This document shows positions 37,102-54,118 of a stretch of DNA of 64,000 nucleotides, in pieces (positions within the stretch are counted from its first letter, which is position 1; every line of letters begins with the position of its first letter). Both the position numbers and the translations under genes were made by a program. The notes under the pieces are model-generated. The model saw only the letters and a program-made list of their open reading frames with translations. It did no database searches and was not told where the DNA came from. Source of the stretch: Fimbriosthenelais zetlandica (Eukaryota); the NCBI GenBank assembly GCA_977030845.1, contig OZ365112.1:18352001-18416000 (forward strand), read 5' to 3'.

Positions 37102-37507
37102 TCACGTCACGAGCACAGCGGGGACGTGTGCCGTATTGGAACTGTTTGCAGCTAGGCTGCCGGCACTGGTCGTCACCGTGCTATGCAATGAGTCCTGGTT
37201 GGAATCTGACGGCGGATGATTATGATGCGATACGTCCGGCTGACGGGATGTGAGAGGCTGCGATCGCTGGGTAGCGATCACGGCCGACGGGGAGGTTGGC
37301 TCGCTCTGTGAAACACCTGGGTGCTGTATCCCGTCGTCGGCTGTCGTAGATGATGATGGTGCAGGCGAACCTTGTGACGACCCGTCAACGTCGGTCGTGG
37401 AATCGATTGTAGCAATACTTCCACCGCCCTCTCCATCATCATCATCATCGTCATCAGAACCACTACCGTCTTCGCCCGTCATAAACCGGATACACTTCTT
37501 CTTCCGT
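37102..37507 (-). CDS. TCF: TCF/LEF terminal exon (end of the C-clamp, RRKKKCIRF, plus acidic and S/T-rich tail)
   Basis: ttttgcag acceptor; phase 2 completes PCR|RKKKCIRF; open to the TGA at 37102-37104. Confidence 0.95.
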
Positions 37508-39826: not shown

Positions 39827-39876
39827 CTATATGATCCACACTGGTCGTTTTCTCACTCGGCATTTCATGTTCAGAT
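39827..39876 (-). CDS. TCF: Candidate alternative TCF terminal exon, degenerate C-clamp-like (DLNMKCRVRKRPVWII*)
   Basis: tacttttcag acceptor; phase 1 entry as for the C-clamp exon; KCRVR resembles KCRAR. Confidence 0.55.
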
Positions 39877-40743: not shown

Positions 40744-40816
40744 CTGCAAGGCTTACACCACTGCGACTGTTGATCCAGACCAAAACGTGCTCGACACTTC
40801 TTGGGATTTGTACATT
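40744..40816 (-). CDS. TCF: TCF/LEF C-clamp (CRARF) exon
   Basis: ctttcag/gtatga; [25 protein letters not shown]. Confidence 0.97.
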
Positions 40817-42858: not shown

Positions 42859-43039
42859 CTTGCCCAAATGTGTTCTTCTGCTCGTTGGTTGATGGTTCTC
42901 GTTTCCTTTTCTTCTTCTTTGTATGTGTGGCATAATTATCACGTGCACTCCATCCAGGATACAACTGCAAGTGTAGTTCCTTTTCTTTACGTGCCATTTC
43001 ATAGTACTTGGCTTGTTCTGACCGGTCTAGGGCATGCCA
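42859..43039 (-). CDS. TCF: TCF/LEF HMG box second half plus basic tail
   Basis: ttttccag/gtgagc; [60 protein letters not shown]. Confidence 0.98.
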
Positions 43040-46000: not shown

Positions 46001-48101
46001 GTCTATATCAATGACTCAGGGAAGACAGGTATCTATTACACGATGTCAGTTCCCAGAATGACCACTAAGGCTTACCACGGCCCTCCTCCAGCATTTCCTG
46101 GCAGTGAAGAGGGGCTCAGTGTTGAGCCAATGATGCATGATGACAAGTCTATTTCATATTTCACCTACAAATTGGCTGCGACTTGCTTGCCAGCGCCAGC
46201 CACTCACTGCCCTGGCAAATCTAATTGGCCGCCATTGAGGCCAGCATCCAAAGGCTGTTAGGGTGACAAGAAGCTGCACAATGAGATTATCTGACTGAGG
46301 GGCAAGCAACAACATGGTCAAACACAAGTGCTGACTGCTAACTGGAGGAGACAAGAGGAAAAAGTACCTTTAAGAAACGATAAGTGGCTTCAATGAAGGC
46401 AGAGACATTTTGACTTGGCTTCATTGAGCCTTTAAGACTGGCTTTAAATGAACTATCCAAATCCTCGGCCTTACAAGTATAGGTTTCCCCCATCTAATCC
46501 GAGGATATTGACTACATCGTGAAAAGTTTTCTGATTCAAGATTGCAGTTCATGAATTGACTGCCTCTTGAGAATACTGGTGAGAGGAGCATCTGTTGAGA
46601 TGTATGGGATATGGGTGGTCAGGATCCACCGCCAAGACCAACAGATAACAGAGGGATCATGATGTCACACTGGTAACTGACCCTCGTCCAGCTCTCTAGC
46701 ACTGACCATCTCATTGGTATGCTGGTCAGTCCATTGGTCAGCTAATGTCCATTCAAGCACATCAAGTCTCCAGCCAGACCTGTCTGGAGCACCACAGAGG
46801 GTTTGAAGCCATCACCCATCACATTTCGGTCTCCATTATCATCTTTTATCTCAAGTCAGAAGAGACAGGCGGACTGCTTCACAGCTTTTAAATGCATTAC
46901 TCAGCTTTATAATGGGTTTTAAATATCAGAGCATACAATAACATCCAGGGATGAGAAAATACAATGACTCATTTGCGTTTTCGTAAATTCATTAGAACAA
47001 CATTCCATTTAAAAGGTAGCAATAAAGGCCACCTCTTTGCTCTATAAAGGGCACAAAGTCAAGTCTTCTGTCATTTCAAAAGGGGCGTAAAGGGCAAAGA
47101 AGCAAACTATTCTGCCTAGGCAGTCGCAGGTTAAAAACAGCTCAAGGCAGCAACAGCGACATCTGTGAGTTCCACAGGATGAAACATACTGTGTACTTTA
47201 TAGCCACTTGGTAGACTAGGGAAAATTCCACAATGGATGATAAGCGCTATCCATTTATATGCCATTCCATCCATAGAGGAATCCTCATCCCATCAAACAA
47301 ATTGAGAACAACGCAATGTAAGACTTTCTTCCTGTTTTCAAAAGTAACAATAACTTGTCCACGAACTGACGGACTGAGTAGCGAATAGCCGTATGTAAGG
47401 GTATAGGACAGTCCGCACATGAAGCTACAATGAAGGAAGAGGAGGGGTCAGGAGGGGTGCGGTAATGAGGAACTTCTCTAAGGGGCTTAGCCAGAACAAT
47501 CCCCTCAGCGCCTTACAACAAAACCTACACAATGAACATGTCTCCATGGAGAGGAACTAGTCTAAATGTTGCCTCTTGTATTGAGGGAAGATTGGGAGGT
47601 GGTGTTCACAGTGAGAAGCACAAAGCAGTCTCATGAGACCATGGTCGGGGAGTGTGTCACTGCTGCTGATCAGGTCATACGAAATCTGCTCCCAGGGTCG
47701 AGCTTTTCTCTTCTGAGGATAATGCTCACTAGCTTTCAATAGATGAAGCAGACCTCGAGCAGGACGACTTAGAAGAGCGCCGGAAACCGAGACAAATCTT
47801 GGAGAGACAGTGTATAAGAATCATTGTTCCTGGGTGCTTCATCCAAGGCGAATACCGCGAGCAGTTGAGCTCAGATTACTACTTGTAAATCATTAGAACT
47901 GGAGTATCAAGAGACTCAATTAGCTCAAAAATACACCACATGTCTTACTGATACGTTAGTGTCTCATTTTCAATTTGTACAAAACTGCAGATAGCATTCT
48001 GATGTCCGTCGACAGAAGAACTTTTCCATATACTTCTCTGATTTTCCGCACGCAAGAACACTAGAAAAAGCCGTCTGTTTACCACACGGTTATATACCTA
48101 C

Positions 48102-48276
48102 CTTCCGTCCTAATATTTGATTGATGGATGCAGATCCCTTAACATTGCCCTCAGCTATTAAAGCTGCTCGGGACTGCTTCATAAAGATCATGAAGGCATT
48201 TAACGGTTTCTTTATATGGTTTTTCTTTGCTTCAGCAGCCCGCTCTCGAGCGTTACTGCAGTGTAATGCCGAGTAT
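48102..48276 (-). CDS. TCF: Duplicated TCF HMG first-half exon (variant B)
   Basis: attttcag/gtaggt; phase 2 in and phase 0 out, identical to exon A; [58 protein letters not shown], no stops. Confidence 0.88.
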
Positions 48277-48331
48277 CTGAAAATAGTTGGTAATCAAAAC
48301 ATTTATGAAAATAGAAATTAAGGCCACTTAC

Positions 48332-48527
48332 CCGTCGACCCAGTATTTGGTTAATGGCAGCAGATTCTTTCAGTGTACATTCTGCTGCTACTTTGGCTCT
48401 TTGCTCTTTCATAAATAACATGAAGGCGTTCAAAGGTTTCTTAATATGTGGTTTTTTGGGTGTTACTTCAGTTTGACTATCACTAGCATTGGAGGATTGG
48501 TCATGGCCATGGAGCAAGGGATGATGT
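48332..48527 (-). CDS. TCF: TCF/LEF HMG first-half exon (canonical variant A)
   Basis: atttccag/gtaagt; ...[42 protein letters not shown]. Confidence 0.98.
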
Positions 48528-51500
48528 CTGGAAATAGAAATAAGAAATGGGTGTAACTTAGCCACCAAGAAGGGTCAAATATTAGAATTATCAACTTTGC
48601 AGCGTCACACACATATCTAGAGATCTACGTCCAGTGATCATCGATTTAGATTAATCTTCTATAGATGAAATACTTACATTATGAGCCACCATAAACCAAT
48701 GTCACTGGGTCAAAGTCGGGTTTTTTAATTGAGACAATTCACATCGGTTAAAGTTTTAGTAAGCAATTAGAGTTATTATATGATGAGAAAAAGTTTAAGC
48801 GTGTTACATTCTTATGTTTAAATACCCATGTTGTTGAATAGGATTGCATGTTTAATACCTTCCTGCCAAGTCAAAAGGGAAAGACACCCCCATCCTAATC
48901 GGGCTAATCCATCCCAGATTTAATTGGCCTTGATCCCCCTGGAGGAGGCCCTTTATATGTTATATGACGCCAAGAGGGGATCTTTTGTGTAAGAGGTCCT
49001 TTGATCTTTTAACCCAGACTGAGGGAGTGATTTGCCACGGGGATCACTGTGCACATCATGTACTATCATCTAGAGGGGCTTAACATATTACACATACTCT
49101 CTCCCTACCAGGCTAGATCACTTTATACAATACCAATCAGCCCACGCCACAAGGTCATCAGGCCTGTGCGTGGATCAAATGGTCTTGATGTTGCCTTTTT
49201 TCATCCCTTTTTGTACACAGGCGGTACATCTTAATGAAGCCAGGGGGATCTTGGAGTCCCGTCAATGTGCTTATTTCTGCTGCAACTGGCTTCATCTTCA
49301 GGCTTAGTGGAGGATGATCTGATTGAGTGACTTGTGACGAAGCTAACAACAGGCCTCATAATTACACCACCACTGGCGACCTGCCATCTATCTTAAATGG
49401 TGATGCCATCTCTGTTTTACCTAATGTTTTCTCAAGGAAGCCACTTTAAGGTGGATACTGAGGTTATATTTCATCTCACTCATACTCAGGTTATATATCA
49501 GCGACATCATTGAATTGTAGACTGCACCATATAGGCAGAACACGTCCAGATGATAGTGTATTGTCAGCTGTTGCTAGTTGACAACTTTCAGCTAAGAAAT
49601 CTCAGAAAAAAAGAGGAAGAAAGTTGAAAGTGGCTGTCACTTTATTCTTAGACGAAACAGACAAAAAGCAACAATCAAAGTTGAATGGATGTGTGTCATA
49701 TGCAACAGGGATGGATGTTAAAGGCAATATACATTGGGAGGCAGACGGGATGGCAGATACCCACTGTAAAAGTGATCAACTATTGAAGTTGATCTCAATC
49801 TGTTTGCTATCTGAGATCACAGACCACTGAAAGAGGACGGCTTCAGAGAGCCCGATCCAGCACCAAGAGCGCACCGCTGAGCTACCAAAGAAGAATCACT
49901 ACTTTGTTTAGGATTTCTGTAAAAATAAACAAAATCCCAAGTCCTGGGACCCGCTGCTGGAATAGCTGAGATTGGGATAGTAGAAGGGAGTTTGTTTTGG
50001 CACCTGGATGGATCTTTCTATGCTGGGTGGATGTGATGCGCTCTACGGATCGATTCAAAGGCGTTGAAGGAATGGGCAATAAACAAGACCGGGTGCCAAA
50101 CACAAACAATGTGGACAGACAACAAACACTGGTTACAGCCACCCTACTCCGGGTCAAATACCTCCAGTGTCCGCATGCTTTGGTTACAGTTAGACATATC
50201 AGACCTGGAGGCCAGAGGACGTCGTCCGCATAGTTTGTGGGCGTCAGGTTTCTCTACATGCCAGCTTACACTAATGATTTCACAGCGGGGTACACTTTAC
50301 TTCCCGCTTCCTCTCCATCTCTCTATTCTGTGCCTCAGGTATTGCTGATGGCAGGGGGAGCTAATAAAATGCTGCCTTTGGAGAGTTTATTCAAAATATT
50401 AAATAATCAACAATATAATTTTGTGAGATAGGCTAATGTTTTAATGTGCCACTGTTTAGGGTCCAAGTTTTCACTGATGGATTTTGATATATTGGATCGA
50501 GGGCGACAACTTGAAACCGTTCTGATTTTAAGCCGGGTCACTGCGGTCTTTCCACCTTGAAATTGTACTTTTCCAGTCAAGAACATCGTAGAAAAGTCTT
50601 TCTAAATGGGCGCGGGGCACATCGATCACGCCGCCTTTGGATGGAGAGAGTGAAGGGGTGAGAGCGCTAGGAGGGATTGATCTTCACCCGAGACATACAA
50701 CATTAAGTAGCGGTGTCTTTGTTCTCGCCCAAGGCCTTGCCCCTCAATTATTCCCAGCTTAACAATGACGGCTACTCAGGCTCTAAGTGTGAGAGGAGAG
50801 ACACCTCTAGAGGCAGCCAGCTGACGGCCACAATTTGGAGACAATGCTTCCACTCCACATACAACATGCTCTAGTGCAATTAAGACCTACAAGACTCCTC
50901 TTTTCACATCTAGTATGTGTAGCTAAAATAGAGAACTCAATATAACTGGTTTCATTCATATGTCACATCTCATGTACTATACTAGATGTACCATTACGGT
51001 GTGAATCTTTCCTGCAGACACACCCATGAACTAACGATGCTAAATCATGCAAGACCCTTTGAAACTCAAACCATTTTTTCTTATTAAGGTTTTTTTAAAC
51101 CCACTTCCTCGTTTAATGCTAAGCAATTAGAGGTGTTTGACGAGCCTTCACCCACTGAGGCTTCACAGTCTGCGATGTGAAAGGAGGCAGTAAATCCTCA
51201 TCACAGCCTCTCCTCATCACTCAGCCGATAACCGCTGCTTTTTCAGGCCTCTAACATTCACCCACTGCCAATAATAATGAATCAAACCAAGACTGATCAC
51301 CTCTCCTCCGCCAGCTTCTCCTCTCCTATATAGATATCAACAATAAGGGAACAACGAGGAGGGCAGAAGGGGGTCGGGCTATCTATAAAACCAAATAAAT
51401 CTATTCTAATGGATGATTATTTCATAAAAACAGAATCCACGTTCAGTGAATGATGAGTAGCTCTGGGGACAGTATACAAGAGGCAAGCAGGGAATAACCT

Positions 51501-53926: not shown

Positions 53927-54118
53927 CTGTGGTTTTCTGAATTTGGAATTTCTTGTTTTGGTCCCGGTGTGACGATAGCGTGGTGCTGCATACTATGGTG
54001 CATGCCCGGGTGGTGGAGAGAGAGACCAGGTGGGCTGAACCGGGCTAAGGGCGAACTACTTAAACCTGGATAAGGTCCTCTATAACCTGTAGACATGGGA
54101 TAACTAGGGTGGCCGTTC
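53927..54118 (-). CDS. TCF: TCF/LEF context-regulatory region exon
   Basis: ttttcag/gtatgt; 192 nt; NGHPSYPMSTGYRGPYPGLSSSPLARFSPPGL...HAIVTPGPKQE matches the YP..TG.R.PYP and HPAIV.P..KQE motifs of TCFs. Confidence 0.95.

Follow-up and report, generated by a model that had tools for sequence, protein, structure and literature searches.

Fimbriosthenelais zetlandica probably makes two TCF isoforms from a single TCF gene, which carries a tandem pair of exons (A and B) for positions 1-42 of the HMG box, exactly one of the two being predicted in each mRNA. The pair lies in the window, the whole 64-kb stretch of DNA analyzed, whose minus strand carries one TCF/LEF gene of the pangolin type, represented by its 3' two thirds. 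With a single TCF gene in most invertebrates, the question arises how one protein can serve the many Wnt outputs. To our knowledge, vertebrates vary only the C-clamp or the E-tail of TCF; a conserved switch within the HMG box is a little-studied way to diversify the Wnt effector.

An alternative-exon pair of this kind was reported with the cloning of Pdu-Tcf from Platynereis dumerilii, in a paper that analyzes neither its evolution nor its mechanism (Zidek et al., 2018, EvoDevo 9:14, PMC5996498). Both HMG variants were amplified from cDNA by RT-PCR with variant-specific primers, and both combine with C-clamp forms (PMC5996498). The first-pass annotation of the window had pointed to such isoforms in Platynereis, correctly. 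That paper aside, full-text literature searches returned no report of an HMG exon pair in any animal. Such a pair is thus in print for one annelid and can be seen in public mollusc annotation; its breadth across annelids and molluscs seems to be undescribed, as does the accelerated yet constrained evolution of exon B in the present lineage. The window represents a second, independent annelid lineage beside Platynereis and, taken with its relatives, points to a switch that is widespread in annelids and molluscs and kept by selection.

Exon anatomy and the choice between A and B

The features of the locus are collected in Table 1. In tblastn searches, three window exons match Platynereis TCF at 66-81% identity, in keeping with an annelid gene; with the published protein (P0217), identity is 66% for the upstream exon and 71% over exon A. 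The N-terminal part of TCF proteins has no tblastn match within the 64-kb window, presumably because the 5' exons are located past coordinate 64000. The basic tail follows the HMG box at the end of its exon, and the C-clamp (CRARFG...CKPCRRKKKC), of the invertebrate-TCF type, is split over 40816-40744 and 37507 onward. From mid-protein onward, the gene reads as a complete TCF of the invertebrate type. A possible alternative 3' exon lies between these two exons, at 39827-39876 on the minus strand, where an AG is followed by a short open frame, DLNMKCRVRKRPVWII, and a stop.

Table 1. Features of the TCF locus in the window
Feature	Position	Strand	Length (nt)	Remarks
Upstream constitutive TCF exon	53927..54118	-	192	ends ...NSENH plus AG, phase 2
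Exon A	48332..48527	-	196	canonical first HMG half, box positions ~1-42, plus 24-residue linker
A-to-B intron	48277..48331	-	55	
Exon B	48102..48276	-	175	alternative first HMG half plus 17-residue linker
Downstream constitutive exon	42859..43039	-		second HMG half plus basic tail KKKKRKRE; starts TGG
C-clamp exon, first part	40744..40816	-		
Last coding exon	37102..37507	-		C-clamp end RRKKKCIRF, acidic/Ser-rich tail, stop codon

Exons A and B are tandem homologous exons of equal phase that encode the same part of the protein. In both cases the first base, A, forms an Arg codon with the AG that ends the upstream exon, and both end in phase 0 before the exon at 43039. Exon A has an acceptor with a strong polypyrimidine tract (...tttccag) and the donor gtaagt, and exon B has the acceptor ...attttcag and the donor gtaggt. 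The first-pass annotation had claimed a second, intact exon for the first HMG half 55 nt downstream of the canonical one, with the same entry and exit phases, its own AG/GT sites and no stops, all of which is borne out for 48276-48102 of the minus strand. Only a single frame is open in either exon and, since both are 3n+1 nt long, exactly one of them is needed for an open frame. The upstream and downstream exons are in open frame when joined through A, and equally when joined through B. Inclusion of both shifts the frame, as had been predicted, with a stop after 7 codons of B (ILGITLQ, then stop), and skipping of both leads to a stop after 4 codons.

What would confine each mRNA to one exon of the pair? 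In the mechanism proposed, the donor at 53927 would be spliced to the acceptor of A (48527) or of B (48276) and the chosen exon joined to 43039, exon B thereby entering mRNA in Fimbriosthenelais zetlandica. Transcripts with both exons or with neither would have truncated reading frames and would presumably be degraded by nonsense-mediated decay. Direct splicing of A to B is probably hindered by the 55-nt intron through steric exclusion. The only good branch-point-like motif (ttgat, predicted by eye) lies ~37 nt from the donor of A and 17 nt from the acceptor of B, and a donor-to-branch-point distance of ~37 nt would be at or below the minimum known in other animals, from work on tropomyosin and in Drosophila. 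Exons 2 and 3 of alpha-tropomyosin are homologous, frame-incompatible neighbors whose branch point lies too near the upstream donor for them to be joined. The window pair resembles them in homology and frame incompatibility, and may do so in the position of its branch point. However, some invertebrates can splice out introns of 55 nt, which makes steric exclusion less than certain. The predicted RNA fold of 48050-48600 contains no unusually stable structure (z = 0.68), and comparison with four related loci reveals no conserved intronic elements, the alignment being confined to exons; a docking/selector mechanism is therefore without support.

An alternative first half of the HMG box

Exon B encodes a recognizable HMG box half. 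Pfam HMG_box matches exon A at positions 1-38, exon B at positions 1-38 of 69 (above the curated cut-off, E = 1.3e-5) and the downstream exon at positions 39-69. The match to the LEF-1 domain of 2LEF has E = 9e-12, and tblastn with six TCF proteins matches exon B with E values of 1e-12 to 3e-16. The same six-protein search finds exactly two copies of the first HMG half in the window, and no third. The TCF/LEF signature of a sequence-specific HMG box (KKPLNAFM...INQILGR...WHAL...YPGW) is present by Pfam, 2LEF and tblastn. Over the last 39 codons, A and B share 27 of 39 residues, 16 of these 27 through different codons, exactly the counts of the first-pass annotation. Nucleotide identity between the two is 67%, with dN ~0.22 and saturated synonymous sites.

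Exon B was aligned to the LEF-1 domain of PDB 2LEF with the box numbering of PMC11458547, in which the base-specific residues of LEF-1 are K7, N10, R20, S32 and N36 (PMC11458547). All five are kept in exon B, as is Met13. The changes from A to B fall at positions 14, 18, 19, 22, 23 and 24 in helix 1, at 27, 28, 29 and 31 in the loop, and at 34 and 42. The retained Met13 occupies the wedge position of the HMG box. Window B reads EGNVKGSAS where a near-invariant TCF stretch reads ECTLKESAA. Box position 27 is Cys in A, Gly in B and Ser in the 2LEF chain, which suggests that the Cys is dispensable for binding.

Would the two proteins recognize different sites? Because B keeps the base-contacting residues, isoform B should recognize the same core Wnt-response element; as predicted from its sequence, it may have altered affinity, DNA bending or partner contacts. 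Apart from a short linker, the encoded proteins would differ only at 12-13 residues, in helix 1, the helix 1-helix 2 loop and the start of helix 2. The initial description of two different DNA-binding domains is overstated, the base-contacting residues that this exon encodes being unchanged in B. With its diverged exon B, the gene supplies two naturally occurring HMG variants whose DNA binding and bending could be compared. In vertebrates, TCF7L2 and TCF7 have alternative C-terminal exons, with E-tail and C-clamp present or absent (PMC2847248). There, as may be the case in the window, alternative splicing of a TCF gene affects DNA-binding properties, but it acts on the accessory C-clamp, through cassette or alternative 3' exons, and the HMG box itself is unaffected by a duplicated exon.

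The exon pair in other annelids and in molluscs

When the exon B peptide was searched against 1.84 billion representative proteins, only P0018 (73% identity) also had the odd residues of B. The contig of P0018 is an ENA metagenome scaffold (L002) that carries the complete A+B pair. Its exon A shares 59 of 63 residues with that of the window, and its exon B, 76 nt past exon A, is 175 nt long and open, with an AG acceptor and a GTAAGT donor. The derived residues common to the two B exons (MKQ.RAA..AEG.VKGS) are absent from every A-type exon. Among the matches of the exon B peptide searches, no protein joins window exon B to its neighbors; a word-indexed search with exon B alone, under a length filter, matched a single short genomic fragment. 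The top-scoring representatives P0002, P0003, P0004 and P0007 have 550-1300 residues, with between three and six complete HMG boxes in tandem (KKPPNAFM...), and are not TCFs.

A scan of metagenome contigs with both B peptides gave 80 loci, which, together with three earlier loci, were all scanned for first-half HMG exons. Second exons orthologous to B are found in L002, L006, L017 and L004. In the polychaete-like L006 and L017, the 41 HMG residues of the first exon are identical to those of window exon A, and the second exon follows 76 and 75 nt downstream, respectively. The L004 contig, likewise polychaete-like, is cut within the first exon, and its second exon is readable. The second exons of L006, L017 and L004 share with window B a derived Ile at box position 24, the change of Cys27 to Gly and the final Lys. 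When these three are compared with one another, exon B has a dN of 0.01-0.03, with dS from 0.5 to saturated, and is nearly as constrained as the first exon. Window B differs from their B copies at 13-14 of 41 residues, whereas the A copies differ at none of 41. Window B is thus a rapidly evolving ortholog of an alternative exon that elsewhere changes little.

The second variant of Platynereis was compared here by its primer, whose translation, DENEVQ, is similar to RENEL/RENEV in the second exons of L006 and L017 and unlike the linker of window B. The published primers (PMC5996498) have no match, with up to 4-5 mismatches allowed, in the window, L002, L004, L006, L017 or L071.

Seven clitellate-like loci on JGI metagenome contigs also carry the pair (L022, L026, L038, L043, L058, L068 and L074); these contigs look like host DNA from metagenomes of gutless oligochaetes or other clitellates. 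An exon of the form ...HI-KKP...GRR is followed ~390-1900 nt on by one of the form ...NY(I/V)-KKP...GRK. The short gap of the window recurs in L002, L006, L017 and L003 but not in these seven, where frame incompatibility must suffice. Protection in general would therefore come from the reading frame, with steric exclusion added in particular lineages. Across the seven loci the second copies are nearly identical.

In annotated proteins, the variable block occupies the same position as in the window, from the ...H/Q-R junction to before the W of WHALDRSEQ. For Owenia fusiformis, P0209 and P0286 derive from one contig and have in common the upstream DENQR and the downstream WHALDRSEQ, with a different first-half block between them; the second copy, KDCTLKESAQVNQM, is near the canonical motif, unlike window B. 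For Pomacea canaliculata, the RefSeq entries 'protein pangolin-like' X1 and X2 (P0200 and P0203), both of 522 aa, differ solely in this block. The Pomacea variants likewise stay near the canonical motif (ECTLKES, ECTLRES), window B being much further diverged. Both isoform pairs are known from annotation alone, and no paper discussing either was found in the literature searched. In oysters, P0177 (a Logan contig) uses type 1 and Crassostrea virginica X2 uses type 2, each joined to the W-exon. The mutually exclusive use predicted in the first-pass annotation thus has comparative support from the second exons of L006 and L017 and from the Pomacea and Owenia proteins.

A bivalve-like contig (L003:9980-10297; ENA ERZ25069870 ctg2742) carries two near-canonical first-half exons, each with a GTAAGC donor, separated by only 35 nt, which is too little for nearly any intron. 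Several public gene models, a Biomphalaria-like entry among them, hold both first-half exons in one protein: P0005 (Elysia crispata KAK3696260.1), P0008 (Bulinus truncatus KAH9502561.1), P0006 (UPI0007D15F45), P0172 (Ostrea edulis isoform X4) and P0191 (Batillaria). In such models the short intron is read through or the second copy is partial. They probably represent mis-joined mutually exclusive exons, and the comparison flags several public gene models as wrongly joining the two.

Selection on exon B and origin of the pair

Between the window and L002, exons align and introns do not. Exon A has a dN of 0.03 and a dS of ~0.9-1.1; exon B has a dN of 0.19 and a saturated dS. Over the 41 HMG codons, the two B exons differ at 41 nucleotides, 26 of them at third positions (binomial p = 7.8e-5). 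They share 32 of 41 residues, where the neutral expectation is 4.7 and the maximum 12 in 5000 simulations that applied the third-position substitution rate to all sites. The open 175-nt ortholog, the third-position excess and the excess of residue identity together point to purifying selection on exon B as coding sequence. The earlier proposal of an old duplicate under purifying selection, and not a decaying copy, is in this way supported by L002, whose exon B has the same length and phase and is under coding constraint. Coding constraint acts on both copies elsewhere too (L002, L006, L017 and L004). By the ratio of the two dN values, selection is ~6 times looser on exon B than on exon A, and the correspondingly faster change of the B protein in this lineage may reflect some relaxed constraint.

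Could exon B serve mainly a purpose other than a second protein? As a poison exon, its inclusion after A would bring in a stop and feed regulated unproductive splicing, a known mode of gene regulation. The stop in the A+B arrangement, which precedes the last junctions by more than 5 kb of pre-mRNA, would suit such a role. However, a poison exon requires no protein-level constraint, and B keeps the HMG frame, the DNA-contact residues and a synonymous excess. The A-to-B splicing on which this explanation depends is disfavored by the 55-nt gap, and in relatives the second exon is joined straight to the flanking exons in full-length proteins (see also PMC5996498). A poison exon is thus an improbable explanation.

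Marginally less probable again is a silent relic, no longer spliced in this lineage and decaying. Some decay could be read from the 13 of 41 residues at which B differs from the L006 copy, against none for A, from the loss in window B of the Tyr-Val that precedes KKP in other second copies, and from a polypyrimidine tract weaker at the acceptor of B than at that of A. Yet B is open, 175 nt long and flanked by AG and GT in both species, despite saturated synonymous sites and unalignable introns. The third-position excess and the 32 of 41 identical residues, against the ~5 expected, also speak against a relic, as do derived residues common to the B exons of both species. A purely non-coding role, in which B would be conserved as an intronic splicing or transcriptional enhancer with a residual likeness to an exon, can be raised in principle for every conserved stretch of intron and has nothing specific in its favor, and it is hardly credible for conservation that has a three-base periodicity, tracks amino acids and stops exactly at the AG and the GT.

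If A and B are alternative exons of one gene, when did the pair arise? In most pairs the residues before KKP are His-Ile in the first copy and Tyr-Val or Tyr-Ile in the second. His-Ile is also present in every single-copy TCF inspected (Lingula, nemerteans, chiton, octopus, arthropods and chicken). There are exceptions to the signature: the first copy of P0009 has Arg-Val, both copies of L003 have His-Ile and both of Pomacea are Tyr-type. For window B and L002 B, where His-Ile stands in this place, either a reversal or a partial conversion from A would have to be assumed. A tree of 47 half-domains (41 columns) is mostly unresolved. One group with an SH-aLRT of 90 holds most second copies and also the clitellate first copies, and window B pairs with L002 B with a support of 98. 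Since the 41-column tree settles so little, the case for a single origin is argued from the signature residues, and a derived Tyr-type second copy in both annelids and molluscs suggests one old duplication.

It is tentatively proposed, with confidence a little short of even, that the pair stems from one ancient duplication before the annelid/mollusc split and has been kept for more than half a billion years, and that exon B of the window lineage is now changing fast yet under constraint, its helix 1-helix 2 loop, elsewhere in animal TCFs nearly invariant, rewritten and its base contacts spared. If so, the resulting isoform of the Wnt effector would be expected to bend DNA or bind partners differently, and not to differ in site specificity.

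The 5' 45 nt of the HMG part, around KKPLNAFM, reach 84% identity when A from one species is set against B from the other (window 48174-48218 against L002:2401-2445, and window 48407-48450 against L002:2652-2693), which exceeds the identity of the remaining exon. Strong constraint or an old partial gene conversion between A and B could account for the stretch. Such a conversion might also explain why window B has His-Ile, and not Tyr-Val, before KKP.
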